A stretch of 64,000 nucleotides of DNA from contig CBFFRP010000397.1 in the NCBI GenBank assembly GCA_965644295.1, positions 62,001 to 126,000 of the forward strand, given 5' to 3'. A model generated the notes under the pieces. It ran no database searches and was not told the DNA's origin. It saw only the letters and a list, made by a program, of their open reading frames with translations. Source of the stretch: Paraphysomonas bandaiensis (Eukaryota; Protista; Chrysophyceae). Positions 7,201 through 56,163 of the stretch are shown here, one piece after another; the first letter of the stretch is position 1; each line of letters starts with the position of its first letter. The translations under genes and the position numbers were made by a program.

Positions 7201-7483
7201 TTCCATCGGTAAATGGTCCCACCATTCCAGGACAAGTCTGAGTTCTGACTGCCTCTTCATAGAGAAGCTCTTTGGCAGGATTTTCAAATGAGCCCTCATT
7301 TATACGTTCTCTCAAAAAATTGGAAGCCTCGCCATATACACCAACAAAGCCTTTTGCGTATGGGGTAAAATACGTAAAATTTTGGCGTCCTAAGCTGTCG
7401 TGTCTAATGTAAGCACTTGTAAAATGTATATGTTGAACCAACACAGCATAAAATATTGCACTCTGAAAGACAAACTGTAACAT
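1262..7483 (-). CDS. Large secreted multidomain protein: signal peptide, EGF/Cys-rich repeats, Calx-beta, several filamin-type Ig repeats and three PA14-like domains
   Basis: 2073-aa intronless ORF. Hydrophobic N-terminus; CPNDCNGAGVCDYWTGTCNC (tenascin-type EGF); TLEFDEGVVERSFLVSIIDDNIVEENEVFQIVL (Calx-beta); repeated D.GNG.Y...Y....G.Y and GSPF.V (filamin); ISIRWTGVIRP...DADDHARLWIG, WSVRYVGLI and SILWDGYLLSP (PA14). Confidence 0.85.
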   Translation of the reverse strand: MLQFVFQSAIFYAVLVQHIHFTSAYIRHDSLGRQNFTYFTPYAKGFVGVYGEASNFLRERINEGSFENPAKELLYEEAVRTQTCPGMVGPFTDGNYFCTAKEYGYCDRRSGVCFCNIGYQGIDCSECTPAYFKVGFLCYPKKTCPNDCNGAGVCDYWTGTCNCLPHRVGEDCGTLLCKSFNDLCEACSTTQCLRCPDGYYLTESNDCSSCYDYDPRCAGCTKDLGCTLCADPILTSVRRSGYRSSDPRVPVEEDTREFSITLPFGTKSPESFADAEAFIVATTPENKLQDNAISCHQGYNNDETWECEKLQASHIVCGHKGVFSFTYPNYVINETSRFFRLSVRRSGGGFGNVLVNYFIRHFTTSDNDLTATAPYTTSQTLEFDEGVVERSFLVSIIDDNIVEENEVFQIVLELPEGGGSIGAQFRTNVTIVDDDLYLLSPVFTSPTETEVVTVANESLSVTVQAVLANGESAVVGGERFLAVIENDMDTWASSTNIYRSSGQRHASRTLCDVVDNGNGTYVINGILREQGRYQLRIWHAFPLGLMGTYHRDAFMENVALERIDRFVNFTWGSGRLLPRGADYISIRWTGVIRPDTSDDYYFLVDADDHARLWIGGSLLIDHWHEQRADLEPFRSVKFEENSLYEVVLEYREVRGDAYARLMWTTATNYSLYEANGGMGNESFVVIPPENMYSLHEIGNSPVDVTVTSGETSPTETECTGPGLFSGTTLEVSYFSFCPRDRYRNFRDDADDFFLSSELFNVTLTLVDDMGYGGQGREVLHPHLVYDVRTHCFEAEYIAERAGKYELNILYHEWHGEPGEHVSGSPFTVNIDPNIMNGPYSRVEGFPDENSLIAGVCYTFTVISKDGSHNLRLKGGEELQTYLYRVGFFEDAAQEVASTEMYDPNLELVRYGEVFDGLNGNYTCEICPVVTGWYEVHILLNGYGVSNLPFQVHSRQESQGLPSGSSSGSSHRGQYVHNSPYRVYVRNNVASGATSTVEVERDLRGCTVGVLASFMITLRDSYGNVVREPLTENNISFHVFQSPEVSARTVDLGNGSHTLSFTPTKTGLNFVQVSINGAPIVDSPFNVPVYDGNASSSHSLAVGGGLHSGRAGFVSFFQVLAFDLDGNRKSNSDDTFVFTTSKSEVINGTLLPCIGDENSLKYCGEYPHDGGLYYAVFVPTVSGFLNISVYLLDEDGRKSELKNTPVVARIYPGPPHAENTIVSGTLNNATVGVQYFVTIVLRDQFGNRLESGGEDVELVLNGVSGDWGTIQPFGTLPGLKDTYNYAGHHGPYSDLYGIWVDHSDGSYTGTFTITTTGVYVMRLSIAEPGLNATFFNDTTFGYLVTFDDNIRDFVANTNGRAVNLGNTISWTGDIGGRPGRGGDLGEGSYIHFFKTRVESMVYLDNREGSSDNGNLSNTVFSVDEKYREDYWSVRYVGLINADYSEIYNFTAVADLNSEVTLWIGGLGMATNMSWRGDSVLHLNTSVNVSEGQYSFTDTKLREFVLEYRHFNGPEIYLQLLWESPSTPKSVVPAHAFRHWRNISHYNVTANPSALCSSCSTAFGSALNSAIVGKLHSFVVYARDIYSNLLQRGGDPLSVVAVGSDGVAFRGVVTDYGNSTYLVEYYPTKSGTYRLYIAIGCCTPHPNVGISREIGLMRPLLVEGSPFLLHISPSTVDPSRTVAVGSSLISGEAGTLKKFEILFRDIHNNPTSIEPLEGLPIDIYCTSTETGQRVFNYADTVVTLSNSSATAAYNITSAGSYLMHVQIMSRDIIGSPFPLFIHPTTPHAKSSVVRGVGKHSAHVNSSSHFEVTIKDKYNNTCVNGGHKLYLRLVGSNRRNDVEKVIVPLCKDMLNGLFKCSYITQVPGEYELRVMLVASSDIYPGGRGLNGLYFADSGGYRLTDNKRANQESIPFLTRIEREVFHSFTNGFAVDITSTDYSNLSTPLNSIGLSSVDFSSGVSILWDGYLLSPLSADFGIQAHARHFNVSVYIDNNLVYSSVDGTLTHTLPVKMWASSVYAIRVEASATSHHVQQKNSYIRLTWHTNSTRETRIPAFYLHDHAEAVAFSPFLVVVED

Positions 7484-8409
7484 ATTCCCCCTTATAATAC
7501 GAGTACTATACTCGAAAAATGTGTTTTACTGATGGTAATAATAGCCTCAAACTGAAATATTTAAAGCCAAGACAGTAACACAACTGGAATGATACAGAGA
7601 CTTTTGATGGGCATTCAATCAAGATCACAGTGCAGTCAAACGAATGAGTTGTCAGTATTTGTTAAATACAAATATAACAACGTCGAAGAGATGCAGAGAT
7701 GGATATATTAAGCCGACTGGTTGATGAGACTGTGACTTTTCTTTATCTTTTAGCACTGCAGATGCAAAAACTGAAGAAAATATTAATCAATACTTTAAAT
7801 TCTAGATTGAAACATCATATAGTTGAATATGCCGTACTACAACCTCTATGCAATATACACTAATCGTAACAATTCAAAGATAAGGGTGCATTATAACAGT
7901 GAGTCGAGTATAACCACACCATGATAATATCACTGCTACATGCTGCAGTACCTCCACCGCAGTTCATTACTTTCTATTACAAAAACAGTGGATGGACTGG
8001 ATAATTACGTTGGGTGGGTTTCCTGATTGTAAAAAATGGGGTTATTATTATAAATATGTCTGATTTTAGTTTTTGAATGTATCAAAACCACCAACACATA
8101 AATCTTCAAAAAAAAGCTTTGAAGACTTCTGGATTGTTGAAACTGCTGCCAACAAGTACTACTGCTGTATTCCACGTACTATACATATGATGTATACCTA
8201 CCAGCACCGTATGTCTAGATCGACACGTACAGCAGTACTGTATATAGACAGAGATATACCATATACAGCAGCAGTATGTATGTATATACCCCACACAGAG
8301 TTATCGTTACTCTTACTGGTATGTATAAATGAGTCACATGATCATCTAAGCCTATAGAATAGTCCTTATATGGTGGGTATAATATAAACAACACTTCAAC
8401 GGTGAAATC

Positions 8410-11400
8410 ATGGCAGACGATATGTCTGCATTGACGAGAGTGACGTCAAATAATAACACTCCAAAGTATTTGATTCCACCCACTGATGATGAGATTCGGG
8501 ATAAATTAAATACACTAACGAGCTTTGAGAAAGCCAATCAGGAAGCAGAGAAATTGAAAGCTAAAATTGCTCTTCGAAATGATAAAGAGAAGCTCAGAGA
8601 AGCAATCAAATCAATGACTCCTGATGAAGTCTTCAATCTATTTGATGATGATGGGAGTGGATATCTTGGTTTTAGTGAGTTTCGTGCTTTACTCCCTGCT
8701 CTTGGGATTGAAATTGGAGATGCGAAAGCCTTTAGATATTTTAATCTTTGTGACACTGATGGTAGTGGTGAAATTGATGTCGATGAGTTTAAAGTTGCTC
8801 TTTTTGCCTGTGATCCGAGTTCTGGAAACCCAGTTGGGTTCGTACCCAATAAAATATTGACACCGCTAGATGCCTTTGAAACGTTTGATGAGAATGGTGT
8901 TGGACACTTAGACGAGGACGAATTTTATTATGCCATGGAATACCTTAATTTGAAGCTGAAAGATAGCAAACACGAGAAATTTTTCACTGGTATTGACTTT
9001 AATAAAACGGAGTGTATTGATTATCTGGAATTTCGTGAAGTGTTCCTCAAAGTGTGTAATGTTCGTAAAGAATTAGAGGATAGAGGAATCGAAGTCCCGT
9101 CTTTCAGCTTCCGAAGTACATTGGTCGATATTCTACGTGAGGTTTTAGATGAAGAAGAAGACAGAGAGCGTCGAGCATTGGCAGAAGCACGGCGATACAA
9201 AGCTTGGATATTTAGTATCAAGGACAAGAAAAGGTATTTGCAGCGTGCGCAATGGCGGTCTTACCAGGAGTTAAGATCGAGTTTAGACGCAGCCGGGCAG
9301 GTGTATGTATTTGGAGAAGGTTCTCACAAGCAATTCTCGCATTCTTGTAGGGATAAGATTGCAACGTCAAAGTTTGAATTCGAGAACTTCGATAAAGTAC
9401 TCATGCTATGGAGAGACAGAGTTCACCCGGAGCAGTTAGTTGAGAAATTGAAATTACAACGTAGGGCGGAGCAACAAGAAGAAAAGAGGTACAGCATCCA
9501 GAGTATGACAGGTGGCCAAGATATGGGCGGAATAACGACCAAAGAGCGAAGAATTGACCCTTACGAAGAAGCATTGGTCAGCCCTTTTACTGGATTAAAA
9601 GTATCTGTTAACACTGCTTCGCTCTGGGGCCGACGGATTCATCATGTAGCTATTAGTGAGAACGTATTGTTTGCACTGGCAGATCAGGGTGAAGTATATG
9701 CTTGGGGTGGTAATAGTTATTGGTGGCATGAAATCCAACCGGATTCTGTTTATCAAACGAAATGGAGAGGCGATATCACACCGAGATCTCAATTACTTAT
9801 GAATGTGGAGAACAAGACTATTCCCCCGGACACCAATGCCAGTGATGATATTGATACAAAAAATCCAGATGATGAGAAAGTAGAATACATTAAAGTTGTT
9901 ACAAAATACTTCAATGTTTGGGAACCTCCGCCAAATGCGGCAACGAGAATGCATTATTTGGAAAAAGAGTTACTGGCGAAAGTTACATATGATGAGATCA
10001 GATTTTCGCTAGAGTGTCGTGGAAAGCAAATTCCAGATATTACGAAGCTCGAGCTTGTGGAAGAGTTGTATCATGATATCATATTGGAGAAGAAACTGCT
10101 TGGGGAACGAGCACACAAGGCGATTAGAGAACTCGAAAATCAAGTTGCGACTCTGAAGAAAAGGAGAAAATTTAAATTAGCAGCGCGAGTTCAAGAAAAT
10201 ATCGAGAAAATGTGGGAGCCTTTGCGTGAAGTGCAAGCTGAGAAACGAGCCGCTGAAAGAGCGAAAAAAGCTGCCGAAGTACATAATAAAGCTATGAAAG
10301 TAGAGTCAGATTATGTGGACTATCGTCACCGTATAGCTGAATTACGGCAAGAAATGGGAGGGAAATACACTTCTCGAGGAAATAGTCTAGAAATCAATAT
10401 CCACGGCACTACACCACGAGGACCAGATATGCAAACCCCTCGTGGGTATCAATCTGCCCTACAAGTGTCAGCTGGGACGGCACACGCCTGCCTAGTTCAT
10501 AGGAGTGGACAGCTGTATTCGTGGGGAGTCGGAGGATCTGGAAGATTAGGATTAGACTTAAGCCAGAAAGGAAATCCTCAATGCGATGTAGCGACTCCAA
10601 CATTGGTACAAGCTTTAAATGGACGACCAGTAACTCGAGTTTCATGTGGGTATTCTCATACCGGTGCCATTGTATCAGGAGGGGACTTGTATATGTGGGG
10701 GTCGTGTGCCCTGGGAAAGTGCGGACTGGGGGGACCTGACGTAATTGGAAACGTTGAATGTTACTGTTCCGTACCGACGAAGGTAATAGTTGGAGCCGAA
10801 AACTATAAGGTTAAAAAGCTTTCCTGTGGTGCATCTCACACTGCTGTTATCACTGAAAACGGACGATTATTCGTATTTGGTTGTGGAGATGGTGGTAGGT
10901 TAGGCCTACGTGAAGGTTCTTATGACACTGTGACAACTCCAACTCTTGTCGAATCTCTTTTGAATGAAACTATAGTTTCTGTTTCGTGCGGAAATTCGAC
11001 GACAGTTGCACTAACGAAGATATCGCATGCTATGGTTGGGCCAAAGGGATTCCAGGTTAGGAAATTAATTGGTGGAAAGGTTTATATAGCTGGATCGGGA
11101 AATGTGTTTGATAAACAATATTCTGTATTTACTTTGTTGAAAGACGTTGAAGATATTCCAATGAAGCTTGCCTCGGCTGGATATCAACACACAGCTCTTC
11201 TTTCGGCAGAAGGAGAGTTGTACTGTTGGGGTAGGAATAGAGGAGTTTGTTGCGGTGTGGCACCTCATGTAAAGTTTATTGAGCACCCTTTACCTATACC
11301 ATGTTTATTTCAAAATGTAAAGAATCTTGCGTTGGGCTGTCGAGCAGAACAGAGTTCGACCTACAACAGCAGAGAGGCCACAGCAGCCACCGATGGTGAC

Positions 11401-12606
11401 ACTGATGGATTTGGTCTAAAGAAATGCACTTCTACACAGCAAGACCCACAACCCTGGCTTGAGATTGACTTAGGACAATTTGCTCTCATAGATGAAATAA
11501 GACTGTGGGGTCGGACGGACTCACCGCACGATTCATCGATGCCTGCTGACCACTTTACTTCCAGGCTATTTCCGTGTTGGGTTATGATTGGAATGGAGCC
11601 TTTCGACAGAAGTCCGGGGGAAATTTCTCTTGCAAACAGCAAGATGGATGCAGTGGCAAAAGTGAAATTTACGGAGAACACAAGAATGAGTTCTTGGAAG
11701 TGTCCAGCTAATACTCAAGGACGTTATGTACGAGTTCAACTTGAGGGGTACAACTTTTTATCTGTGGCTCAAGTGGAAGTGATGGGTAACTGGGGTATTA
11801 GTACTGGTGTGGGACGCGTGTCTTACGCGGCTGCAGGGCGGGATGTCACTGTTGCTGTCATAAGACCGAGAACTGACCCTATTGATATTGATAATATATA
11901 TCAAAGAGCAGCATACGCAGATGCAGGCAATGCTGATGTACTTCGACAATATGAGACCTTTGCATTGGAATATGACAAATATGGTAGAGGGGAAGCTATA
12001 TCTAAGTGCCATATATGTCGTGGTCAGACTCCATGTGAAATATGTCTCTTGAACAAAATGTATAAAGAGGAGATAGAGAATATGCCTGCTGGAATAGGTG
12101 GAAGGAGGAGGAGATTGGATAGCATAGAAGATTACCTTATCAACGCGAATAAACCAGAGCTCGTATTACCAGTTATTCATAGAGTTCAGCGACCAAGTAA
12201 ATGGGAAGATTTTAAAGCTAAATGGTTTCCCAGTTTTGGTCCTTTGCGCTGGTTCGCTGGAAACCCGAAATCAAAGACTATTGCACCAGAATTTGAGCAA
12301 TCGTCCTTGCTGTTAGACGGATTTAAACGAAATGATATTCCAACGTCTCCAAACCCTAGCATCCAACAACAAGAGCATGGGAAAACACAGAGTACTAATA
12401 ATGCTAACACACATATGCAGGTGACAGTTGATGCCGATAATTCCGAGCCCTATGCTCCTTCACCAGCTATGTCACCTCACGTACAATCTGCACAAAATAG
12501 TACTCACACGGTGAAGAATCCATTTCCGCGAAGTATTGGTGACAAGATTGATGAAACTAAACAAATGATAAATAAGAAGAAAGCTGCTGCAAGGAAAAGT
12601 AGATAG
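8410..12606 (+). CDS. EF-hand, SAP-like, coiled-coil, RCC1-repeat and F5/8-type-C (fucolectin-like) domain protein
   Basis: 1398-aa ORF. Four EF-hands (DDDGSGYLGFSE, DTDGSGEIDVDE, DENGVGHLDEDE, DFNKTECIDYLE); RCC1 repeats (VSAGTAH...YSWGVGGSGRLG, VSCGYSHT, LSCGASHT); NLALGCRAEQSST...PWLEIDLG...GRYVRVQLEGYNFLSVAQVEV (discoidin/FTP). Confidence 0.85.
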   Translation: MADDMSALTRVTSNNNTPKYLIPPTDDEIRDKLNTLTSFEKANQEAEKLKAKIALRNDKEKLREAIKSMTPDEVFNLFDDDGSGYLGFSEFRALLPALGIEIGDAKAFRYFNLCDTDGSGEIDVDEFKVALFACDPSSGNPVGFVPNKILTPLDAFETFDENGVGHLDEDEFYYAMEYLNLKLKDSKHEKFFTGIDFNKTECIDYLEFREVFLKVCNVRKELEDRGIEVPSFSFRSTLVDILREVLDEEEDRERRALAEARRYKAWIFSIKDKKRYLQRAQWRSYQELRSSLDAAGQVYVFGEGSHKQFSHSCRDKIATSKFEFENFDKVLMLWRDRVHPEQLVEKLKLQRRAEQQEEKRYSIQSMTGGQDMGGITTKERRIDPYEEALVSPFTGLKVSVNTASLWGRRIHHVAISENVLFALADQGEVYAWGGNSYWWHEIQPDSVYQTKWRGDITPRSQLLMNVENKTIPPDTNASDDIDTKNPDDEKVEYIKVVTKYFNVWEPPPNAATRMHYLEKELLAKVTYDEIRFSLECRGKQIPDITKLELVEELYHDIILEKKLLGERAHKAIRELENQVATLKKRRKFKLAARVQENIEKMWEPLREVQAEKRAAERAKKAAEVHNKAMKVESDYVDYRHRIAELRQEMGGKYTSRGNSLEINIHGTTPRGPDMQTPRGYQSALQVSAGTAHACLVHRSGQLYSWGVGGSGRLGLDLSQKGNPQCDVATPTLVQALNGRPVTRVSCGYSHTGAIVSGGDLYMWGSCALGKCGLGGPDVIGNVECYCSVPTKVIVGAENYKVKKLSCGASHTAVITENGRLFVFGCGDGGRLGLREGSYDTVTTPTLVESLLNETIVSVSCGNSTTVALTKISHAMVGPKGFQVRKLIGGKVYIAGSGNVFDKQYSVFTLLKDVEDIPMKLASAGYQHTALLSAEGELYCWGRNRGVCCGVAPHVKFIEHPLPIPCLFQNVKNLALGCRAEQSSTYNSREATAATDGDTDGFGLKKCTSTQQDPQPWLEIDLGQFALIDEIRLWGRTDSPHDSSMPADHFTSRLFPCWVMIGMEPFDRSPGEISLANSKMDAVAKVKFTENTRMSSWKCPANTQGRYVRVQLEGYNFLSVAQVEVMGNWGISTGVGRVSYAAAGRDVTVAVIRPRTDPIDIDNIYQRAAYADAGNADVLRQYETFALEYDKYGRGEAISKCHICRGQTPCEICLLNKMYKEEIENMPAGIGGRRRRLDSIEDYLINANKPELVLPVIHRVQRPSKWEDFKAKWFPSFGPLRWFAGNPKSKTIAPEFEQSSLLLDGFKRNDIPTSPNPSIQQQEHGKTQSTNNANTHMQVTVDADNSEPYAPSPAMSPHVQSAQNSTHTVKNPFPRSIGDKIDETKQMINKKKAAARKSR

Positions 12607-35261: not shown

Positions 35262-35859
35262 TATTGAAAGTCTTATTAAATTATTAACAATAGGCGTTAA
35301 GAATTAGCACCAGTTTAGTAGCTAGAAGAAAACTATTCAATTTACCTGTAACTAGCGAAAGCGCAACCTCTATTATCCTACAATTTAACGCTACGGAGGC
35401 CGCTTGTGCGTCGCCGCAAGCACCACAAGGTGCAACCACCTCCGCTCTATTGCTCAAAGCAAACGCCGTGAGTCGTGAGTAAGCAGAACGTTGATATATC
35501 TGACATCTGCTGACTTCAGGATTTTTGAGTCCTTGAGGTGAACGTCCCGGATGCTTGACTTCAGCAGTCAGCAGGCATCTCCAATACCCCGGTTACCATT
35601 CAGGTGGGCCCTGTCCCGGAATGCCCTTGAGGTGGGACCATTTTCGAATGCCTGTTTATTCGTCAACGCCCAAAGATGTCTACACAAGACAAGTGAAACG
35701 TATTGGTATCCCTTGTACCACACAAGCATTTGGCTAAGAGTGGGTAGAACAATATCTGCTGTCTATATGTTTGCGGCTCACGTTAGTTTCCCGGATAAAT
35801 ATCTCCGGTATTATCCCCCAGAACGCCACGAAAAGGTGCGAGTCCGACTTTGTTTAGAG
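35262..35859 (-). mobile_element. ~600-bp non-autonomous retroelement (SINE/RIME-like), inner copy with 12-bp TSD
   Basis: Its 3' ~190 nt (minus strand) align with the LINE 3' UTR at 53965-54150 (gtggttgcacctt..ggtgcttgcggcgacgcacaagc..cgtagcgttaaat.gtaggataa...cttctagc...aacgcctattg). Flanked by tgatgacgtcta (35250-35261) and tgatgacatcta (35860-35871). Confidence 0.8.
35777..35859 (-). ncRNA. Putative HDV-like self-cleaving ribozyme at the 5' end of the non-autonomous element (second copy 36152-36237, plus strand)
   Basis: Two-copy consensus: P2 GGCUCAC/GUGAGCC, P3 ACC/GGU, L3 UUUUCGU, P4 CCGGA..UCCGG, J4/2 GAAACUAAC, in HDV order. P1 is imperfect in both copies. Confidence 0.5.
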
Positions 35860-36667
35860 TGATGACATCTAGAAGTATGTTGTAGCAAAACAATTAAACT
35901 AACTAATGCATAACTCTGATATCCTACTATTTAACGCTACGAAAGCTGCTTGTCTTTAAGATGCGACCACTTTCGCTCTCTGTCTTTCAGTAAGGTGAAC
36001 TATCCCGGATGCTTGACTTCAGTAGGTAGCCCAATACCCCGGATGCTCTTCAGGTGGGCCCATTCCCGGATGCCGTTTTTTCGTCAAGGCCCAAAGACAT
36101 CTACACAAATGAAACATATTTGTGTCCCTTGTACCACACAAGTATTTGACTCCCTCAAAAAAGTTGAGCGCACACCTTTTAGTGGTGTTCTGAAGGATAA
36201 GAACCGGAGGTATTTCTCCTGGAAACTAACAGTGAGCCGCATATATAGTCAGCAGATAATTTTCTGTGCACTGATAGGCAAATACTTGTGTGGTACAAGG
36301 GACACAATAATTAAAAAGCAAAAACACATGGTTGTAGGCAGTCATATCTAATATCTACTATACGTCAAGTATATAGTGTTACTCTATTCTCAAGAGTTCT
36401 GAGTGTATTCTCACAACTTGTAAATGATAGCTTGCCAGCAGCAACGAAAGTATGTTTGATGTGGAAATTTACCAACAGCATACGTCCTACATCGTACAAT
36501 TGAATGACTACTCATAACCTTATACCTGATACAACGATGTCTTATGATTACTACATTCAGCATATATCCGTATAAAAAGGAGTTCACACAAAACTAGTAG
36601 ATACTGAGTAGTAGTAACCCTTCCTTTGACAAATCACACACAATTATTCAACTTTACTCGTCAACAC

Positions 36668-45698: not shown

Positions 45699-46396
45699 TT
45701 GCTCAGCAGAATGTATTGTGATATATTTTGGCTGTCAATAAATAACTAGTAATCGTAGTATGCACGCGGTGGTGTGCTGTTGGTGTATACCTAACTATTA
45801 ATGATGTAGTCAGTTAAACATTGTAACAATGATTCACCTAAACTGAAATATCATGTCACCCAACAACAACAAAGTGTATAAATTTAAGCAATTTAGAAGT
45901 AAGTTTATCTGAATTACAGTACTTGATACTTTCTGTGTATTTCTCCAGTATCAAGTAGTTTTTAGACTAAATTGGGGTGCATTGTTGTTATTTTAAATAC
46001 TCGGGCATGAGACAATAAGTCTTTTTTACGGAAATCTCCTAGCTCAAGAAGTAAAAAAATAATACTGTGCTAATACTTGTTCCGATAGAAAGTATACATA
46101 TCACAACATTGAGTAACACTGCACAACAGCGAGGAGTACTAACACCTATAATATCAAAGATATCTACTCTTTTATAATCAGATATATATGTCTAGACTAC
46201 TACTACTTCATTGTAAACTTTTTATTTAGGTATTACTGAATTCTAATCTGCTTAAGAGACTCTTAAATTATACTTGTAATAGCACAATACTGACTGAATT
46301 ATGTTAGAAGTGATACTGTAATATTGTGATGTTGTAGCACTGTGATTGTGAAGACACATCATAGCCAAGGCTTCCAGGACGGACAACTATGATCTC

Positions 46397-47908
46397 ATGA
46401 TATCATTCACGCTACCAGAGCACAAATTGGATACCACGCACAGCGCCCTACTAGTTGCCCAGCATCTCGCGAATGGCAACAAACCCTGGGCAGACTCCAC
46501 TCATGTTGTATCTAGGCATGTGCGGACCCTTTGCCTGACAAAGGGTATTCCCTCAACAGCCACTGTTAGTCTCCGTAAGACACTCATGCAATATGAATCC
46601 TCGACTCCACACACAGGACTACATCTAGACACGGAGGATTTCCAACTGCTACTCGATCTTCTCTCCATACCATACAGACTATGGGACGCTGTTCAACCGC
46701 ACCTGGCGCCTGGTTGGGCACAGCTGTCACCATTCTCCAGACAGGCACTAACAGTGCACGCTTCTACCAACACTGTGGTAACCCATGACATCATACGCAG
46801 CCAGCATGGGTTTCACATACTCAATGCAACAAATATCCCCACCTGCATCATGCACGCTCTAACACGGACTCAGGAGCGGCTATCCTGTTTTCTACAACAC
46901 CAGACCTCCAGACAGAGCACCAATATCCTCTGGACTTCTGAGCCGTCAACTGTACCACCTATGCTACATGAGCACAGAGAGCAACAGGAACAGAGGGAAG
47001 TAATTGCAGTCTCCTTGTCACCGAGAGCTCGACGTCAACTACGACAGATGAACCCCACGGACCGTCGACAACTCAGGCTCCATATGTGCGACATGAGCAG
47101 AGTCTACCGCCTCACCCTCAGACCCTCAGCCCTTCGCACACAACAACATATCCCTAGTGATGGGTACTGCGCATACAGCACACTCTATCATCTGCACATT
47201 CTTGCTTCAAGCAGGCGACACACTCGCTCCTGTCTGAAATTAGACCTCAAACAACGCAAGGACCGTCACACGCTAGCATCTTTCATAAATACATTAGGCA
47301 CCCAAGCGTTCGACATAATGCAATGGGAGTGCATGGCCCATCACACACTTCAGCCACTACGACATAAGTTAGATCACGCACAGGCCGCACTTTTAATACC
47401 TACTAAAACAACATACACTACGGAAGACGACATAACTCACTGGCTCTCAGTGCGAGAAGTCCACCTTTTAGCCTCTACTATCAACCCCTGCACGACGTGG
47501 GCGCAAAATGGTAATTACCTCAGCATTGTAGGCATCCCTACTGACAAAGTAGCTTATAACATCGCATGGAAGGTGGACGAACTTAGGGACGCTATTCGTG
47601 ATAACTACTACCATGTCATACTACAAGATGCTCACTACTTCCTCTTAGACCCTGCCGGTCTTTCTACTGCCCTAGACAACGCCCTACTATCTCTTGAAAA
47701 CACCTTGGCCACCAGTATACTCTCAACGGCTGACCCCATCGCTCCACCTACACTCCCCGCGGACTCAATCACGAACAACAATAGGACATCAAAGATGACC
47801 AGCACCAGAACAACCTCGTCAAGCAGCACCAAGTTAGCACGAACAAATCGACAGATTCTGCAGGCTTCAACCCTGGAGCACTACCATCGCACAAGAAGAT
47901 GCAGTTGA
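46397..47908 (+). CDS. LINE upstream ORF (N-terminally truncated) with an OTU-like cysteine protease domain (~47140-47650)
   Basis: QHIPSDGYCAYSTL matches the OTU Cys motif (IPxDGxC); HWLSVREVHLL resembles the central W-loop helix; HVILQDAHYFLL supplies the catalytic His motif. Confidence 0.7.
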   Translation: MISFTLPEHKLDTTHSALLVAQHLANGNKPWADSTHVVSRHVRTLCLTKGIPSTATVSLRKTLMQYESSTPHTGLHLDTEDFQLLLDLLSIPYRLWDAVQPHLAPGWAQLSPFSRQALTVHASTNTVVTHDIIRSQHGFHILNATNIPTCIMHALTRTQERLSCFLQHQTSRQSTNILWTSEPSTVPPMLHEHREQQEQREVIAVSLSPRARRQLRQMNPTDRRQLRLHMCDMSRVYRLTLRPSALRTQQHIPSDGYCAYSTLYHLHILASSRRHTRSCLKLDLKQRKDRHTLASFINTLGTQAFDIMQWECMAHHTLQPLRHKLDHAQAALLIPTKTTYTTEDDITHWLSVREVHLLASTINPCTTWAQNGNYLSIVGIPTDKVAYNIAWKVDELRDAIRDNYYHVILQDAHYFLLDPAGLSTALDNALLSLENTLATSILSTADPIAPPTLPADSITNNNRTSKMTSTRTTSSSSTKLARTNRQILQASTLEHYHRTRRCS

Positions 47909-50900
47909 AACACGCCCAAACTGCGTTGACAAGTCGATGCCAGCCAACCCGGAAAGCCAAAAAGGTCGTAAATTACGATGAAAGTGACCAACCAACGAAC
48001 CTTCACAACTCACACCCAACCACGACCACACGAACGATCAGACCAACTCCAGCACTAGATACCACCGGCTGGGACAGGGACTGGTCAAGAAAGTTCTACA
48101 TTGCGTACGCCGATAACACTGCCAAAGGACTATCCCTTTATGCGAAGAACACATTCCCAGCAGACGTCATCATTGCTGAGTACAAAGGCAAACGCTATCC
48201 ACTAACAAAGATGAGTCAGTCTACAAGGCGTTCTGATTACATAGTTCAAGACAGTACTGGTACCTTCGCAATAGATGGCTTTGACCAAGTCCGACAATGT
48301 GTAACATGCGAAGCTGGGTATATTAATGACCCCCTAGCCACAAATATGGCTAATGTCAAGTTTGTCACGAAAAATAAACGCCTCTATGTCCGTACAATAC
48401 GTTCCATTGCTAAGGATGAAGAACTTCTCATCAACTACGGACATCATTATTGGTGTGATCAACGCTGGCCACTTGAGATATTAATCCAAGCCAGGGCTGC
48501 GTACGACAGCGACATAGGCGGTGCCAATATAGCAGTATGGGACAGACTCCTTGCAGACAAGAGTGGAACTCCTACAGAGACCTCCAGCAGCATCCCCAAG
48601 GATCCCTCGGGAGCAGCCATGGGACTCCGACTCTCCACATGGAACACAAATGGCAATCCGGCATCACACACAGGTAAAGCCCAAGCTATCATCCGACACT
48701 TTAAGCGGCAAAAATTGGACGTGCTCCTATTACAGGATGTCCGTCTAACAGAAACTCAGGCCAACTTCTTCACGCGTATCATCGAAGATGCACTCCAGGG
48801 AACAAGAATATGCCTCTTCCTCAGCAAGCAGCCAAAACTGACTTCAAGAGACCCACTAATGGGGGGTACAGTAGTCATAATCAGCGAATACTGGAAGCGC
48901 CGTCTCGCCTTCACAAAGGCTGACTTTACGGGACTTGGTTTAGTGAGCCGACTAGAGTTCAAAACGTCGGTGGCGCACACCCTAGTACTAATAAGCGTCT
49001 ATCTACCCCCGAAGCCATCCACGCCAGGCACTTGCACATTATGGAGCAAATTGACCAAGCTAGGGAGAGCGTCCCGTGGTATCTGTACTGCTGACCCCTA
49101 CAAGCTCCTATGCAACATCCTTACGAAATGGGTCACTAAAGCCAGAGCCAAGGACCATACTGTCATTGTCGCCGGCGACTTCAATGGCTCCATGGAGACA
49201 AATCCTAAAGGCAGAGACATACGACCACTTGCCGACAAACTCCAACTGGCTGCACCACTCCATGAGCTTCTCCTACCCAGGAAAACATATCATACCTTCC
49301 ACAGATTAGACAAAGGAATATCGCGGATCGATCATATTCTACACACGCCGTTACCTCCGAACATGTCTGTTACGGACACTGGCTGCCTTGACTCCCCCTC
49401 ATTACTCGCAGCAGCCTTCGATCATCGACCGGTCTGGGTCGGTTTCACCGTACCAGTCAATCTTGACCCTCGACCACCTGAGTCGCACCTCCGAATCCCC
49501 CCCCGTCTCAATGTAAACCCGAAGGACTCCAAGGAAGTACAGGCATACACCGCAAGACTCCTCCAACTTCATGCACAACTACCACATTTCGACAACGGAT
49601 CGACTACCATACTCCCTCCTGAGGTGGCAGCCAACAGACTAGCGGCCATCCATCACATAACCCTCCAGGCTTCGCTTGAGGCGAAGCGTCCTGCATGTAC
49701 ACATAGCACACGCCTACACGAACGTTGTCAGCGCACACGCTCAAAGTTCAAGAATGGCTTTTCCCCGGAAATGAGAGTAATACAGGAAGGAATGCTCATG
49801 GTTTTGCGGATTATCCAAAAGATGTTCAATTCTGCTGGATACAAACGGCATGGATGGCGCGGCCCCCCGGCAACCTCCCCCACCCACGAAATCATCACTG
49901 CATGGTTCGCCCGATGGGACTCCTATCTCAGGAGTTCTCAGGGTCACATCAAAGGCATATCGGACATCAACTTCTGGTGCAGCCACCGCAACGCGGACCC
50001 ACGAGTAATCCTGGGTTGGAACGAAAAGCAAGCCACCAAGAAAAACCTTCTCCGAATTGCCTTGCGACTGAGAGGACTTCTTCATGGAAGAGCCAGGACA
50101 GAAATGCGGACTAGACTCACGGCTCGCACCAAGCAGATGGAGGCACTGCTACAGCAGAAAAGACTTCAAGCAATTCTTCAGAAAATTGGTCTCAAGGTCA
50201 AAACACCACTCCGACTTACCACGGTGAAAACAACGGACGGACACATCCTCACAACGCCGCAAGACATTCATGAAGGCATTAATGCGCACTTCCGTGAACA
50301 TCATGCCAAACCTCCTGGACTTGACCCTGTAGCACAACAGCTCCAGGATGACCCTACATGGTGGAAATCACTTCTTGATCCGGGCTCAGCGACATGCCAG
50401 GAACCACTCCACCCCCGCTCGAAAATTCCTCTTCCCCTGCAACTGGGGTTACGACGGGCCCTTTGTACCAAGACCACTCCGGCCATGGCAGCCACACTCA
50501 AATCTACTCTTGCAAAAGACATCACCCAGGATGAATTCTACTGCACACTTCACTCTCTCTCCTTCAACCGCGCGCCTGGACCCTCAATGGTCTCCTCCAA
50601 CATGGTCAAATCCTGGCCACCGGTAGTTCAGCGAGAGGCTTACATCCTCACCAGATCTCTCTGGAAACATAAACATGTGCCCATTTGGTGGAGAGACAGG
50701 GTAATGTCTCCCATTCTCAAGAAACCAGGAGAATCCTCCCTCACTAATCTCCGACCGATTGGTCTGCTTGAAGTCAGTAGGAAAATATTAACAAGGATAA
50801 TCACTCATAGAATTCTTACCGTATGGGAGGAACAGAAAGTTTTGCATCCGTCCCAGCATGGTTATCGCTGGAGGAACGGGACGGACACAGCGATACTACG

Positions 50901-53900
50901 GGTACTCGCGGCTGCAGAAGAAGCAAGACGAAAAGGCGACCAGCATATATGTACACTCTGGGACTTCAAGAAGGCCTTCGACTCAATTGCGCCTAACCTC
51001 ATGCGTCTCGCGTGGGCACGACTGGGCGTTCCGGACGATGTAGTTGACTGGTTTGGCAACTTAGATGCCGGCGGTCTAACATTTCCCTGGACACCATTCA
51101 TGGCAAACAACATAGAGCCACGTTCTCTCCTTGACCTCCTGTCCGCAGACGGCCACTTCATTGCACTATTCAGTCTGGGTTTCGAAGCCGAAAGGGGTAT
51201 CACCCAAGGGGGCACAGAATCCACATGCGCCTGGGTGGCACTCTACGACATCCTTCTCACGTGGCTGGACATTGAACTGTCAACAACGAGTCCAACGTTA
51301 CCAACTATTCAACTCACGACTCCGACTACAGGCGAAATAAAGATCTCCTTCGCGGATGATCTTAACACAATAGCTAAATCCATACACGCTGCCCAACTCA
51401 TTGCCCAACAAATATCTGCGTTCTGCGTACTTTCGGGAATGGAACTCTCTATCCCCAAAGTAGTTTGCACAGTGTTTCCGATCCTACAGGATTCCAACAA
51501 GTCCTCCGACCCCATTGGCTACATCATTCTCTACGACTGGTCATGGCGCCCACACCCAGTCCCTATCCAAACATCACTAGAGTCGATACATTACCTCGGA
51601 GCAGACCTTCCTCTCACAATCACAGACAAGGCCTCCCATGACTGGTGTCTAAAATACCTGAAAGTCGTGACCACACACCTAGGGATCAAACAGGCCTCAG
51701 CCGGCTGTAAAGTCATGGTTATCGAGACCCAAATCATACCGACTTTGCTCTATAGAGCCACCAAAGCTTCATGGCCGCTACACTGGTACAGAGAAATTGA
51801 CGCTGCTTGCGCAACCCTCTACAGAAAGGCCCTCAGTCTAGGCCCTGGATACCCCACGGAACTAATCTACCTCTCACTCAAGCACAACGGATTAGGTATG
51901 AAACGTTTCTCAGACTCAGCGCAGGAGCAAAAATGGGGATCTCTACAGCGCGCAATAACCCTCGGGGGAGAAGCAGGTCAAGCAGCACATTTTCTACTCA
52001 CTCAGACAACAGAGCCACAGCCCCAATACCACCACTATGTTCTCAGCCTCAGGGAATGGGGAACGGAATTGGGCCTTACCCTTCAGGAACCTGAGCCCCC
52101 CGAACCACAGGATGAACACATGCTGACCAACCTAAAACAAGAACTCGGCCTTAATAGTGTCCAACCAGATACTTTCAAGGCTATCTTCACAGATGGATCA
52201 TACACAGCCAGTGCGCTCTCCACTCGTCGCCTCACTCATGTCAATCCGCGAACCCGATGGACACACCGAGGAGGTGCAGCGGTCGTCTACTTACCCCCAG
52301 AAAATGCCTGGGAAGATGGTACAACCACAATACTACGACTAGATACACCCTTTCGTGACGTGCCCGGTTTGGACTCATACGCATATGAACTCATAGGCAC
52401 AGCCATGGGGCTTATACTCTCAACACGTATTCCCGAACACATACGAAGCCACACAGACTGTCAGGCAGTGTGCACCCGCACTGAGGAAGCACTCTCCACA
52501 AGACGCAGAGCTCTCGGTCACCGTGCAAAAGGGGTACTACTCGAAAGCATCGCAGCCAGCAGAGATTGCAAACGACAGGTGACCTGGGTGAGGTCTCATC
52601 CCGAACGACGTACCACAGATGAAACGGAGTGGACGTTTGAGGACAAGGGCATCTATATTGCGGACGCAGTTGCGGGTGAAGACTGGCATGAAGTCGATCG
52701 CATCCTTGGAAAAAATAACTACACTGTCTGCACAATTGCGATTGACAGTGCCATCGAACGCTTACTAACTGCTGGATTATGGCACTGGCGTATGCACAGT
52801 ACAAGACGGCCATACTACTCTAGCCCACTCCTTACTAATTTCCAGGATCTCTGCGACCTAAGGACACTTGAGAACTACACTTCAACCAGAGATCAACGCT
52901 ACGGACACAATCCTGATCGAGCGCCTGGCTACTGGACCAATAGCGGAGTACACCTCCCGCGCAAACTAGCTCAAGCGGATGGCAGTGCATCCAAAGACAA
53001 ACTCAGCTCAAATCTACGCCAAAGAATACTCAACACGGCACTGACATGGGACAAATCTTTCTGCATAGGGAGGAACCGGGCCAAAACCAAACAGGGGCTT
53101 GACCTGACCAAAGCCGCATGCTCTGACTGCGGGTTTCGACTAGATTCCCTAAAACATATGTGCCTCGACTGCACACATGAATCCATCACCCAAATAAGGG
53201 AAACTGCATTTCAATCGCATAAAAATGTGCTCCACGAAATACAGAGAACTCAGACCTTACCCAACTGGATCACATCTGCACTACGGAGACTCTCCAGCAG
53301 AGCCTGGAATCCCTCCATCCCACAGGTCGAGAGATACTGGACTGGAACCATCACAGCAGCCCAACTGGAAACGGTCTTCGAAGATGCCATACACAACCAC
53401 CTGACGGCACACAGTCTACGGAACCTAGAAACAGCGGTTATTAATCTCCTGCAACCGCTTTACACTGCAGCGAAGCTTATGCTACAGGATCGCGGTTGTC
53501 GCTATATCACCATGTCCAAAAGGCCGCCCAGACTACTCCCGAGACCCCGTCCGAAACGCAGTCAGTCAAGACAACGTCCGAGAGTCCTTCGACTACTAGG
53601 GGTCCAACGAAGACCCCCCACAGCGTCCCCGACTCCAGACACACGTGCACACCTCACAGGTCCTACCCGACAGAGCACTGGACTGCCCAGACCTCCACAA
53701 CGCCGACGGCTTCGACAACTCTATCTACACCCGCGGCCCCACAGGAGCACAGTAACACAGACTACAAACCCAACTCCTCCTCCCAACAATCCCCACCACT
53801 CTCAACCCACACATCTGGAACTAGGTGCACTCAGGACCCTAATCCAGAACGCTGAGCCCCCTCCAACACCAATGGAGACCCATCCCAAAGGGAGACCCCC

Positions 53901-53910
53901 AGATCAATAG
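47899..53910 (+). CDS. LINE polyprotein: SET (~48091-48453), AP endonuclease (~48625-49440), reverse transcriptase (~50570-51600), RNase H (~52180-52675), CCHC Zn finger (~53119-53172)
   Basis: SET: KGLSLYAK..IIAEYKG..AGYINDP..NVKF..IAKDEELLINYGHHYW. APE: TWNTNG, LLLQD, AGDFN, SRIDHI, DHRPV. RT: APGPS, LRPIGLL, QHGYR, DFKKAFDS, GITQG, FADD, YLG. RNase H: FTDGS, AYEL, HTDCQ, WVRSH, IADAVA. Zn finger: CSDC..DSLKHMCLDC. 2003 aa with no stops. Confidence 0.93.
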   Translation: MQLKHAQTALTSRCQPTRKAKKVVNYDESDQPTNLHNSHPTTTTRTIRPTPALDTTGWDRDWSRKFYIAYADNTAKGLSLYAKNTFPADVIIAEYKGKRYPLTKMSQSTRRSDYIVQDSTGTFAIDGFDQVRQCVTCEAGYINDPLATNMANVKFVTKNKRLYVRTIRSIAKDEELLINYGHHYWCDQRWPLEILIQARAAYDSDIGGANIAVWDRLLADKSGTPTETSSSIPKDPSGAAMGLRLSTWNTNGNPASHTGKAQAIIRHFKRQKLDVLLLQDVRLTETQANFFTRIIEDALQGTRICLFLSKQPKLTSRDPLMGGTVVIISEYWKRRLAFTKADFTGLGLVSRLEFKTSVAHTLVLISVYLPPKPSTPGTCTLWSKLTKLGRASRGICTADPYKLLCNILTKWVTKARAKDHTVIVAGDFNGSMETNPKGRDIRPLADKLQLAAPLHELLLPRKTYHTFHRLDKGISRIDHILHTPLPPNMSVTDTGCLDSPSLLAAAFDHRPVWVGFTVPVNLDPRPPESHLRIPPRLNVNPKDSKEVQAYTARLLQLHAQLPHFDNGSTTILPPEVAANRLAAIHHITLQASLEAKRPACTHSTRLHERCQRTRSKFKNGFSPEMRVIQEGMLMVLRIIQKMFNSAGYKRHGWRGPPATSPTHEIITAWFARWDSYLRSSQGHIKGISDINFWCSHRNADPRVILGWNEKQATKKNLLRIALRLRGLLHGRARTEMRTRLTARTKQMEALLQQKRLQAILQKIGLKVKTPLRLTTVKTTDGHILTTPQDIHEGINAHFREHHAKPPGLDPVAQQLQDDPTWWKSLLDPGSATCQEPLHPRSKIPLPLQLGLRRALCTKTTPAMAATLKSTLAKDITQDEFYCTLHSLSFNRAPGPSMVSSNMVKSWPPVVQREAYILTRSLWKHKHVPIWWRDRVMSPILKKPGESSLTNLRPIGLLEVSRKILTRIITHRILTVWEEQKVLHPSQHGYRWRNGTDTAILRVLAAAEEARRKGDQHICTLWDFKKAFDSIAPNLMRLAWARLGVPDDVVDWFGNLDAGGLTFPWTPFMANNIEPRSLLDLLSADGHFIALFSLGFEAERGITQGGTESTCAWVALYDILLTWLDIELSTTSPTLPTIQLTTPTTGEIKISFADDLNTIAKSIHAAQLIAQQISAFCVLSGMELSIPKVVCTVFPILQDSNKSSDPIGYIILYDWSWRPHPVPIQTSLESIHYLGADLPLTITDKASHDWCLKYLKVVTTHLGIKQASAGCKVMVIETQIIPTLLYRATKASWPLHWYREIDAACATLYRKALSLGPGYPTELIYLSLKHNGLGMKRFSDSAQEQKWGSLQRAITLGGEAGQAAHFLLTQTTEPQPQYHHYVLSLREWGTELGLTLQEPEPPEPQDEHMLTNLKQELGLNSVQPDTFKAIFTDGSYTASALSTRRLTHVNPRTRWTHRGGAAVVYLPPENAWEDGTTTILRLDTPFRDVPGLDSYAYELIGTAMGLILSTRIPEHIRSHTDCQAVCTRTEEALSTRRRALGHRAKGVLLESIAASRDCKRQVTWVRSHPERRTTDETEWTFEDKGIYIADAVAGEDWHEVDRILGKNNYTVCTIAIDSAIERLLTAGLWHWRMHSTRRPYYSSPLLTNFQDLCDLRTLENYTSTRDQRYGHNPDRAPGYWTNSGVHLPRKLAQADGSASKDKLSSNLRQRILNTALTWDKSFCIGRNRAKTKQGLDLTKAACSDCGFRLDSLKHMCLDCTHESITQIRETAFQSHKNVLHEIQRTQTLPNWITSALRRLSSRAWNPSIPQVERYWTGTITAAQLETVFEDAIHNHLTAHSLRNLETAVINLLQPLYTAAKLMLQDRGCRYITMSKRPPRLLPRPRPKRSQSRQRPRVLRLLGVQRRPPTASPTPDTRAHLTGPTRQSTGLPRPPQRRRLRQLYLHPRPHRSTVTQTTNPTPPPNNPHHSQPTHLELGALRTLIQNAEPPPTPMETHPKGRPPDQ

Positions 53911-54375
53911 CGCCGGTGAGTCCACGGACACACGATAAAGGCGAATTTCATATCACACAAAAGAACGGAAGTGGTTGCACCTTGGTGCTTGCGGCGACGC
54001 ACAAGCAGCTTTCGTAGCGTTAAATAGTAGGATAAAAGAGTTTGTATTGATTAGTTACGGGTAGTGGTCTAACTAGTATGACTAGCATTCTTCTAGCCAC
54101 TAATTGATGCAAGGTCTCAACGCCTATTGCTAAATAATCAGACATTCACTACTGTGAAGACACATCAATCACCAACGCCAATGTTCTTTTCTACAAATCA
54201 TGTCTTTAACAGCAACTATATTTACTGTTTCATTGTATACTTTTAATAGCTACTCCTATATTGTTATCCTCTAGTAGATTCTGTATTTCATTGCTACATA
54301 GAATACAGGATGGCTACTAGCTATAGACTTCAACATGCTTCAAGTACGTACGTAGGAGTGGGTTGTAGCTTAGTA

Positions 54376-56015: not shown

Positions 56016-56134
56016 ATGGACGGTCATACAATGCAAACCGCACCCGCTCTCGTTCCGCTCGCGGAAGTTAAGTTGCATCTGGCCCGGTTAGTAGTACGGT
56101 GGGTGACCACGTGCGAAGTCCGGGTACTGTCCGT
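56016..56134 (+). rRNA. 5S rRNA gene (single copy)
   Basis: 119 nt. Helix I atggacggt/actgtccgt pairs; conserved ggtcatac, gaagttaag, ggttagtagtacggtgggtgaccacgtgcgaa motifs; followed by a Pol III oligo-T terminator. Confidence 0.95.
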
Positions 56135-56163
56135 TTTTGACTATTTTTGACTATTTTTGACTA
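56134..56163 (+). terminator. Triplicated Pol III terminator (tttttgacta)x3
   Basis: 10-bp tandem repeat, each unit with T5, directly after the 5S gene. Confidence 0.8.

Follow-up and report, generated by a model that had tools for sequence, protein, structure and literature searches.

We analysed a window of 64,000 nucleotides from Paraphysomonas bandaiensis (GenBank assembly GCA_965644295.1, contig CBFFRP010000397.1, positions 62,001 to 126,000 of the forward strand), and coordinates given below without another label are those of this window. An original prediction, made from the letters alone, had placed here an intact long interspersed nuclear element (LINE) encoding its own SET lysine methyltransferase and an OTU-like deubiquitinase. 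The element at positions 46362 to 54153 is an AP endonuclease (APE)-type LINE, i.e., a retrotransposon without long terminal repeats (LTRs) that has its reverse transcriptase (RT) and AP endonuclease in one open reading frame (ORF). It further carries a SET domain, which is genuine and maintained, and Cys/His modules that are probably OTU-like cysteine proteases. The features of this copy and its flanks are as follows.

46347-46361 (+): left target-site duplication, 15 bp, TGTGAAGACACATCA; abuts the element and is an exact repeat of 54154-54168
46362-54153 (+): LINE copy of subfamily A, 5'-truncated and frameshifted; equals positions 4548-12339 of the 12.3-kb full-length element
46397-47000 (+): putative degenerate protease-like module (second BLASTP segment, 27% identity); TTHSALLVAQH, with no Cys, where the metagenomic relative P0001 has GRGFCSVAAAH
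47039-47761 (+): OTU-like cysteine-protease module (conserved motifs, weak fold match); putative Cys codon 47168-47170 and His codon 47633-47635
47871-47873 (+): private 1-bp deletion, CCC for CCCC, splitting the polyprotein frame into an apparent "ORF1" and "ORF2" (alignment of eight copies)
48061-48510 (+): SET domain with C-terminal helix (Pfam core 48127-48441; Pfam, alignment and AlphaFold2); contains KGLSLYAK, AEYKGK, GYINDP, EELLINYGHHYW and WPLEILIQARAAY
48637-49350 (+): APE endonuclease (Pfam Exo_endo_phos, aa 247-484, E 7.5e-10)
50719-51600 (+): reverse transcriptase (Pfam RVT_1, aa 941-1234, E 5.3e-15)
52159-52848 (+): RNase H-like region, at motif level only; FTDGS ... E ... D ... 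SHPE ... AD
53119-53172 (+): CCHC zinc knuckle, aa 1741-1758, typical of LINE ORF2 C-termini; spacing kept in the relatives P0169, P0170, P0173 and P0175
53479-53910 (+): Pro/Arg-rich basic tail (29 Pro and 24 Arg in 143 residues) and stop codon
53911-54153 (+): 3' untranslated region (UTR), ending in ...CATTCACTACT without a poly(A) or microsatellite tail; same 3' end in all copies
54154-54168 (+): right target-site duplication, 15 bp, an exact match to the left copy

In the window, a 503-aa ORF (46397-47908) overlaps a 2003-aa ORF (47899-53910). The latter was confirmed, with SET placed N-terminal to APE and RT by Pfam, while the 503-aa ORF has no Pfam match, and the motifs KGLSLYAK, GYINDP and EELLINYGHHYW were located where the original prediction had put them. 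The arrangement as two overlapping ORFs, in contrast, proved to be an artefact of the private 1-bp deletion: CCC at 47871-47873 occurs in the window copy only, and the frame is continuous in each of the other seven long copies. The OTU-like, SET, APE and RT parts share a single frame in copies L002, L004 and L005, and open frames of 2724 aa (L004), 3021 aa (C440) and 2823 aa (C433) were found in other copies. Both forms, CCC and CCCC (with the extra C after 47870), are present in contigs of public DNA runs, and the deletion is therefore a real variant rather than an assembly error. Intact natural copies (L004 and L005) were used in place of a frame-repaired window copy or a consensus. Among the profiles that the two ORFs had been expected to match, SET, Exo_endo_phos and RVT_1 were recovered, whereas OTU and RNase H were not.

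A DNA search of the same genome (62.6 Mb in 669 contigs) recovered at least 25 further copies at 98-100% identity, which split into two subfamilies, A and B, and many of which are truncated at differing 5' points. The window copy is 99.6-100% identical to its sibling subfamily A copies vs approximately 98.2% to subfamily B, and its G+C content is approximately 50%, compared with 36-45% across most of the window. Upstream of its first base, shared sequence continues in seven other long copies, for up to 4547 bp in subfamily A copies and approximately 1560 bp in subfamily B copies. The full-length element measures 12,339 bp (A) or 9,397 bp (B), each within its own 10-13-bp duplication. Both full-length forms start with AAT(C/T)T..CTCTGCCCTACG and end with CACTACT, and self-BLAST of full-length A and B found no long terminal or inverted terminal repeats. 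Because the full-length copies reach 4.5 kb further upstream, the window copy is 5'-truncated by 4.5 kb and is not the intact element that had been supposed; with this truncation and one frameshift, it is a young but dead insertion. Its 15-bp duplications are nevertheless exact, as predicted. Among 13 truncated copies inspected, 6 have clean duplications of 9-15 bp, including that of the window, and so do 4 full-length copies. There are at least 13 distinct 5' truncation points, while the 3' end CACTACT is common to all copies. Variable 5' truncation, duplications of 9-15 bp and a fixed 3' end show that the copies multiply by target-primed reverse transcription.

The copy survey also bears on whether the SET and protease domains might be accidental cargo without a role, an assembly chimera or an adjacent host gene. 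That the window copy itself is broken would suit such an accident, but the same architecture recurs at dozens of unrelated loci, each with a duplication of its own, and long open frames contain it in families diverged to approximately 40% identity. It is found on independent metagenomic contigs too, and the overall ratio of non-synonymous to synonymous change (pN/pS) between the subfamilies is 0.19. This explanation is ruled out by the survey, and we grant it next to no probability. As the original prediction had held, both domains are parts of the element rather than adjacent host genes: the duplication encloses them, all copies at unrelated loci have them, and in intact copies they share one frame with APE and RT.

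Intact subfamily A copies (12.3 kb) have a possible upstream ORF followed by a giant ORF of approximately 3160 aa, laid out as an 851-codon open frame, one stop codon and then the giant frame. Intact subfamily B copies (9.4 kb) have one open frame of approximately 3000 aa. The parts of the giant protein follow in the order OTU-like module 1, degenerate module, OTU-like module 3, SET, APE, a 450-aa linker, RT, RNase H-like region, CCHC knuckle and basic tail. The in-frame stop codon between the 851-codon frame and the giant ORF (L029 8065-8067, also in L030 and L033) is kept in three subfamily A copies; it could be read through, or it could separate two ORFs. Neither the upstream 851-aa frame nor the upstream parts of the giant ORF had a Pfam match, and the 851-aa frame had no usable match in the ESM Atlas. 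Over the first 640 nt of the element, A and B share only 81% identity, vs 98% for the remainder, and judging from these alignments this stretch is probably the 5' UTR; a coding role for the first 195 codons of the upstream frame was rejected (pN/pS 0.69). Subfamily B has lost the upstream frame, together with the Cys half of its first protease module, to an internal deletion with 42-bp tandem repeats at the junction (B and A were compared on L031/L032 8438-9307 vs L029 5454-9307). Derivation of B from A by simple deletion was rejected in part, since the 5' 640 nt diverge so much more than the rest, and the comparison suggests a 5'-end replacement or recombination between lineages.

The SET domain matched Pfam (PF00856) at aa 77-181 of the 2003-aa ORF with E 1.7e-8 and 35.2 bits, against a cut-off of 22.4, and it ends 65 residues upstream of the APE endonuclease. 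SET is above the Pfam curated threshold in L004 and in the relatives P0001 and P0167 as well. With HMMER, 1.84 billion representatives were scanned exhaustively, and nearly all of the 170 matches fell on the SET part. In an alignment of 30 SET sequences, Tyr, Asn, Asn, Tyr, Tyr and Trp are invariant at the motifs SDY, YIND, xN, NYG and YW, and the SET clade retains EYKG, the motif Asn and the ELLINYG Tyr without variation. The AlphaFold2 (AF2) model built on this alignment reached a predicted local distance difference test score (pLDDT) of 88.2 and a predicted template modelling score (pTM) of 0.82. It had 371 matches in the PDB at E <= 0.001, and the 50 best listed were all SET or PR domains. 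The best fold matches were SET7/9 (TMq 0.70-0.72, C-terminal helix included), followed by MLL3/4, PRDM, SETD8 and LegAS4.

The original prediction had likened this domain specifically to compact viral SETs such as chlorovirus vSET (1n3j). vSET is indeed a small SET without pre- and post-SET zinc clusters, as here, with a profile match at E 3.5e-7. It is not the closest by profile or by fold, however, and the element's SET possesses, in addition, a conserved C-terminal helix and N-terminal strand. When PDB sequences were searched with the family profile, KMT2C, PRDM12, SETD7, LegAS4 and EZH2 ranked above vSET, and by fold SET7/9 and MLL3/4 come ahead of it; the specific likeness to vSET was thus not upheld. 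The sequences nearest to the element's SET are transposable element (TE) polyproteins and metagenomic fragments, not viral or bacterial minimal SETs. Both the pre-SET and post-SET zinc clusters are absent and no reader domains lie nearby. The conserved C-terminal helix WPLEILIQARAAY occupies the place of the zinc post-SET, an arrangement which we take to resemble the SET7/9 structure. Structurally, SET7/9 (SETD7) and MLL3/4 match best (TMq 0.70-0.72 and 0.58-0.59, respectively, E about 1e-8), sharing with the element the fold, the ELxxxYG motif and the C-terminal helix for a zinc post-SET. They differ from it in identity (17-24%), and the element has ND for NH, GxS for GxG and no MORN or WIN/complex context.

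Fixed differences between subfamilies A and B comprise 59 synonymous and 35 non-synonymous changes; pN/pS, 0.19 overall, is 0.15 in the OTU region and 0 in RT. When the 511-aa OTU-SET segment was searched against the genome, at least 90 matches were obtained, at 100, 97, 84, 76, 59, 55, 48, 40-44 and 36% identity, many of them stop-free within frames of 2000-3700 aa. The expectation that other copies would retain both parts was borne out by these results, and the SET domain and the protease module appear to be held by purifying selection across families diverged to approximately 40% identity.

Among 5.8 billion proteins, 12 metagenomic relatives of the APE-RT part were found. Encoded on a metagenomic contig of 8.8 kb, P0001 matches with 41% identity across 1271 aa and keeps the same order of parts, with the Cys/His motifs, SET, APE and RT. 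P0167 (73% identical) carries SET and APE, and the SET-like region of P0172 (26% identical) is degenerate (hhalign 85.6%). Another member of this LINE clade is P0016, with 25% identity in an APE-RT stretch of 1183 aa; it encodes 3923 aa on a 13.8-kb contig, in a single ORF (L035 1454-13225) with the order RNase H, APE, RT, SET, OTU (Pfam E 6.7e-18) and Ulp1. Its SET is 30% identical to that of the window, flanking motifs included. Since 11 near-identical cluster members of P0016 are found on different contigs, its host has this element in multiple copies. In P0127, a gypsy-type pol (RVT, RT_RNaseH and integrase), a SET of the same sequence neighbourhood follows the integrase at the C-terminus, and this SET neighbourhood also occurs beside Ulp1 domains in P0046, P0101 and P0111. 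Because diverged families and relatives bear SET and protease parts in differing positions and element classes, the SET/protease cassette appears, from these comparisons, to be of long standing, to have been retained, and to have moved both to new positions and from one element class to another. A further APE-RT relative, P0168 (49% identical), is filed at NCBI under a "Nitrospiraceae bacterium" metagenome-assembled genome and is probably eukaryotic contamination of a bacterial bin.

The best explanation of these data, and one we consider probable, is a SET/OTU-like LINE with an active SET writer at its target and with proteases that cut its polyprotein. The SET domain would be an active SET7/9-like lysine methyltransferase and, being covalently joined to the endonuclease, would be carried to the nicked target. 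There it would most likely methylate a histone tail, or another protein of chromatin or of the ribonucleoprotein (RNP), at the integration site, and this methylation would promote integration or maintain expression of the new copy.

Two other roles for the domain were weighed. Chromodomains, which steer chromovirus integration, are located at the integrase C-terminus, and this is where the SET of the gypsy-type P0127 sits. SET could likewise be a non-catalytic chromatin tether: by binding a histone tail, it would guide the endonuclease or integrase to a given chromatin state, with no mark written. The alteration of the GxG motif in this LINE family and in P0001 would agree with such a function, as would the distant P0172, which retains a SET-like fold with the YG..YW motif lost. 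A binding module would not, however, need Y60, N89, Y126 and Y130, which are invariant across the 30 relatives, and the SET model superposes on active enzymes; we regard tethering as unlikely. SET7/9 methylates many non-histone substrates, and the enzyme might instead act on the element's own protein or on a host restriction or repair factor. The closest structures are complexes of SET7/9 with TAF10, ER and DNMT1 peptides, and the lack of pre-/post-SET zinc clusters and of nearby reader domains points the same way. Substrates are nevertheless not predictable from likeness of fold, and the histone enzymes MLL3/4, PRDM, SETD8 and LegAS4 score almost equally, so that a non-histone target seems doubtful to us, though a shade less so than a tether. 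The preferred reading remains that of a writer acting at the site of integration.

Evidence for the protease modules comes from motifs and modelled folds. The upstream ORF of the window carries the Cys motif PSDGYCAYS (aa 253-261) and the His motif QDAHYFLL (aa 410-417), and the first Cys/His module of the giant protein has MEGFCGL ... NDHFF. The patterns DG(Y/F)C and (A/D)H(Y/F)(F/Y) are kept in P0001 and in P0003 (His), at 40-45% identity, and in the paralogous subfamily A module. The AF2 model of the OTU-like module places Cys44 at the first turn of helix 40-57 and the His on strand 199-203. The top 50 Foldseek matches of this model were all OTU proteases, but at E 0.01-0.2 and TM 0.15-0.39 and from a model with pLDDT 54. 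VIA-align against nairovirus OTUs gave Z 5.0-5.4 over 118-131 residues, the only matches spanning the whole module, and an Atlas feature search gave a score of 0.91 to an OTU-bearing set. That the distant LINE P0016, of the same clade, has an OTU significant in Pfam speaks for the assignment too. On balance we consider it likely that the module has an OTU-type or papain-like protease fold, and its identity is probably OTU. Of the OTU-like deubiquitinase first proposed, the Cys and His motifs were confirmed and are conserved; Pfam, PDB profile and hhalign searches did not recover an OTU domain, and the fold matches are weak.

In function, the OTU-like modules would be papain-type cysteine proteases that most likely cut the giant polyprotein into working parts, with removal of ubiquitin-like modifiers as a possible second activity. 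The OTU-fold proteases of arteriviruses and tymoviruses take part in polyprotein or replicase processing and in deubiquitination, and we rate self-processing as no less likely a role than ubiquitin removal. Alternatively, the modules could be mainly deubiquitinases or modifier removers, which protect the RNP or remodel ubiquitinated target histones. For this speak the top fold matches, which are all ubiquitin- or ISG15-specific OTU enzymes, although the fold evidence is weak. Related elements add to the case: the LINE P0016 bears an OTU domain and the SUMO-type protease Ulp1, NeSL and Utopia LINEs carry an Ulp1-like protease (PMC4640811), and Dualen/RandI LINEs of Chlamydomonas have a protease related to Josephin, a deubiquitinase family (PMC9977147). 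A LINE with a single 3000-aa ORF and no separate ORF1 has, on the other hand, an obvious need for processing, viral OTU-fold proteases perform both jobs, and the Cys is lost in one of the three modules. A mainly deubiquitinating role is accordingly possible, with the odds somewhat against it, and polyprotein cutting by the modules remains the part of the preferred reading that we retain.

Several observations weigh against an active writer joined to self-cutting proteases. In the SET domain, the SET-N GxG motif is G-L-S in this family and G-N-A in P0001, so that cofactor binding could be weaker, and the usual NH motif is ND throughout the SET clade. The pN/pS of SET between A and B is 0.43, which is uninformative, with 5 fixed differences only. 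For the protease, the OTU-like module had no Pfam match to OTU (PF02338) at E <= 1, and a PDB profile search with the OTU-like alignment gave chance matches only. An hhalign comparison of the module with the true OTU of P0016 gave a probability of 0.7%, although the Cys motifs were aligned. The model of the module is of low confidence (pLDDT 54), and in a search independent of Foldseek the OTU matches at Z of approximately 5 were not above the helical background. No conserved polyprotein cleavage site was found; a GG between SET and APE was considered as such a site and rejected, being absent from P0001. Subfamily B has multiplied although it has neither the upstream ORF nor the module 1 Cys, and those parts are therefore dispensable or supplied in trans. 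Finally, contigs of two poly(A) metatranscriptome runs (one marine sample) match much of the element with 97-99% identity, one piece of 2.5 kb lying over the RT, which fits transcription in nature and is no proof of it. The element is also present in DNA runs under three organism labels and in several marine metagenomes.

Literature searches found no description of a SET-carrying LINE, and as far as they reach the exact architecture is new; LINEs with accessory enzymes are already known. The novelty that had been claimed thus applies to the architecture, while the idea has precedents. Helentrons, including a Phytophthora proto-Helentron, have SET and OTU genes with a LINE-derived APE (PMC4067079). 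Like the present element, they combine a SET-domain gene, OTU-like cysteine proteases and an AP endonuclease in one TE (PMC4067079). As compared by description only, however, they are rolling-circle DNA elements with Rep/helicase in which SET and OTU are separate, occasional ORFs, whereas here the SET and protease modules are fused in frame to the APE and RT of a retrotransposon. NeSL, Utopia and Dualen resemble the element in having a polyprotein with a protease of a ubiquitin-like-modifier family, and some have RNase H. The protease family differs (OTU-like here), and NeSL and Utopia use a restriction-like endonuclease (RLE) and Dualen both APE and RLE; a SET domain is not reported for NeSL, Utopia or Dualen in PMC4640811 and PMC9977147. 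Retrotransposons with DNA methyltransferases include SymbioLINE-DNMT, a dinoflagellate LINE, and DIRS/gypsy-DNMT3 (PMC5890265), as well as DAM-carrying DIRS/LTR elements (bioRxiv 10.64898/2026.05.21.726589). They share with the element a self-encoded modifying enzyme, which has been read as an adaptation to the host epigenetic landscape, but they methylate DNA, whereas the element's SET is of the protein lysine methyltransferase type. A survey of 172 eukaryotic genomes lists SET among the chromatin domains fused to TE domains, SETMAR included (bioRxiv 10.1101/2021.11.30.470311). Its SET-TE fusion gene models resemble the element in joining SET and TE domains in one predicted protein; the accessible part of that survey gives counts by class and describes no SET-APE-RT LINE family, its copies or selection on it. 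SETMAR differs from the element in that it is not mobile; it is a host gene that acquired its transposase part by capture.

Retrotransposons are usually viewed as targets of host chromatin silencing. The DNA methyltransferase elements indicate that some carry epigenetic tools of their own, and the SET-endonuclease fusion, if it is a true writer, would extend self-encoded epigenetics to histone or protein lysine methylation. It would also unite nickase, writer and reverse transcriptase in one compact, naturally fused protein. Given young intact copies, a confidently folding domain and relatives, this reading is directly testable. That LINEs and a gypsy-type pol both contain this SET lineage, which also occurs next to Ulp1 or OTU proteases, suggests a shared TE accessory cassette, which may bear on the origin of the SET, OTU and APE parts of Helentrons. 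More speculatively, and with a good deal less confidence, the element could represent an unplaced LINE clade of marine protists with a long-held, TE-borne SET lineage and OTU/Ulp1 proteases. The cassette would move between positions (before APE or behind RT) and between classes (LINE, gypsy-type LTR elements, Ulp1 proteins and perhaps Helentrons), and the SET would write a histone mark at the nick, setting the chromatin state of new copies.

Regarding the remaining parts of the polyprotein, the nearest solved structures to the RT are 8c8j (RNA-directed DNA polymerase) and human LINE-1 ORF2p, both at approximately E 1e-7. In the RNase H-like region, D12, E77, D100, H147 and D169 are invariant in 8 relatives, and this D-E-D-H-D order matches the pattern given for LINE RNase H (PMC4640811). 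Neither Pfam nor a profile search of the PDB with the RNase H-like alignment gave a match for RNase H; the RNase H originally proposed is thus borne out in motif order and not by profile. The zinc finger placed at the C-terminus was confirmed as the CCHC knuckle, which is conserved in relatives. By inspection, no PD...(D/E)xK motif of an RLE follows the knuckle, and membership in Dualen/RandI is therefore disfavoured.

Several smaller observations concern the 3' tail, the surroundings and a short form of the element. The sole other match to the element in the window is a 57-nt stretch at 35897-35953 (-), 89% identical to part of the 3' UTR. It adjoins a "partner element" at 35262-35859, and BLAST found no longer shared tail. 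Elsewhere in the genome, a truncated copy (L018 1316-1499 / L027) abuts an inverted 185-nt piece of the element's 3' tail, 88% identical. Rfam found no ribozyme in the whole window or the 5' end of the full-length element; its sole match was a 5S rRNA gene (RF00001, 100.7 bits) at 56016-56135 (+), outside the element and 1.9 kb downstream. A junction that joins 46540 to 53812 and continues through 53812-53838 occurs in contigs of two RNA-library runs and of one apparent DNA run. It indicates an internally deleted short derivative that lacks 7.27 kb and is present in RNA libraries too.

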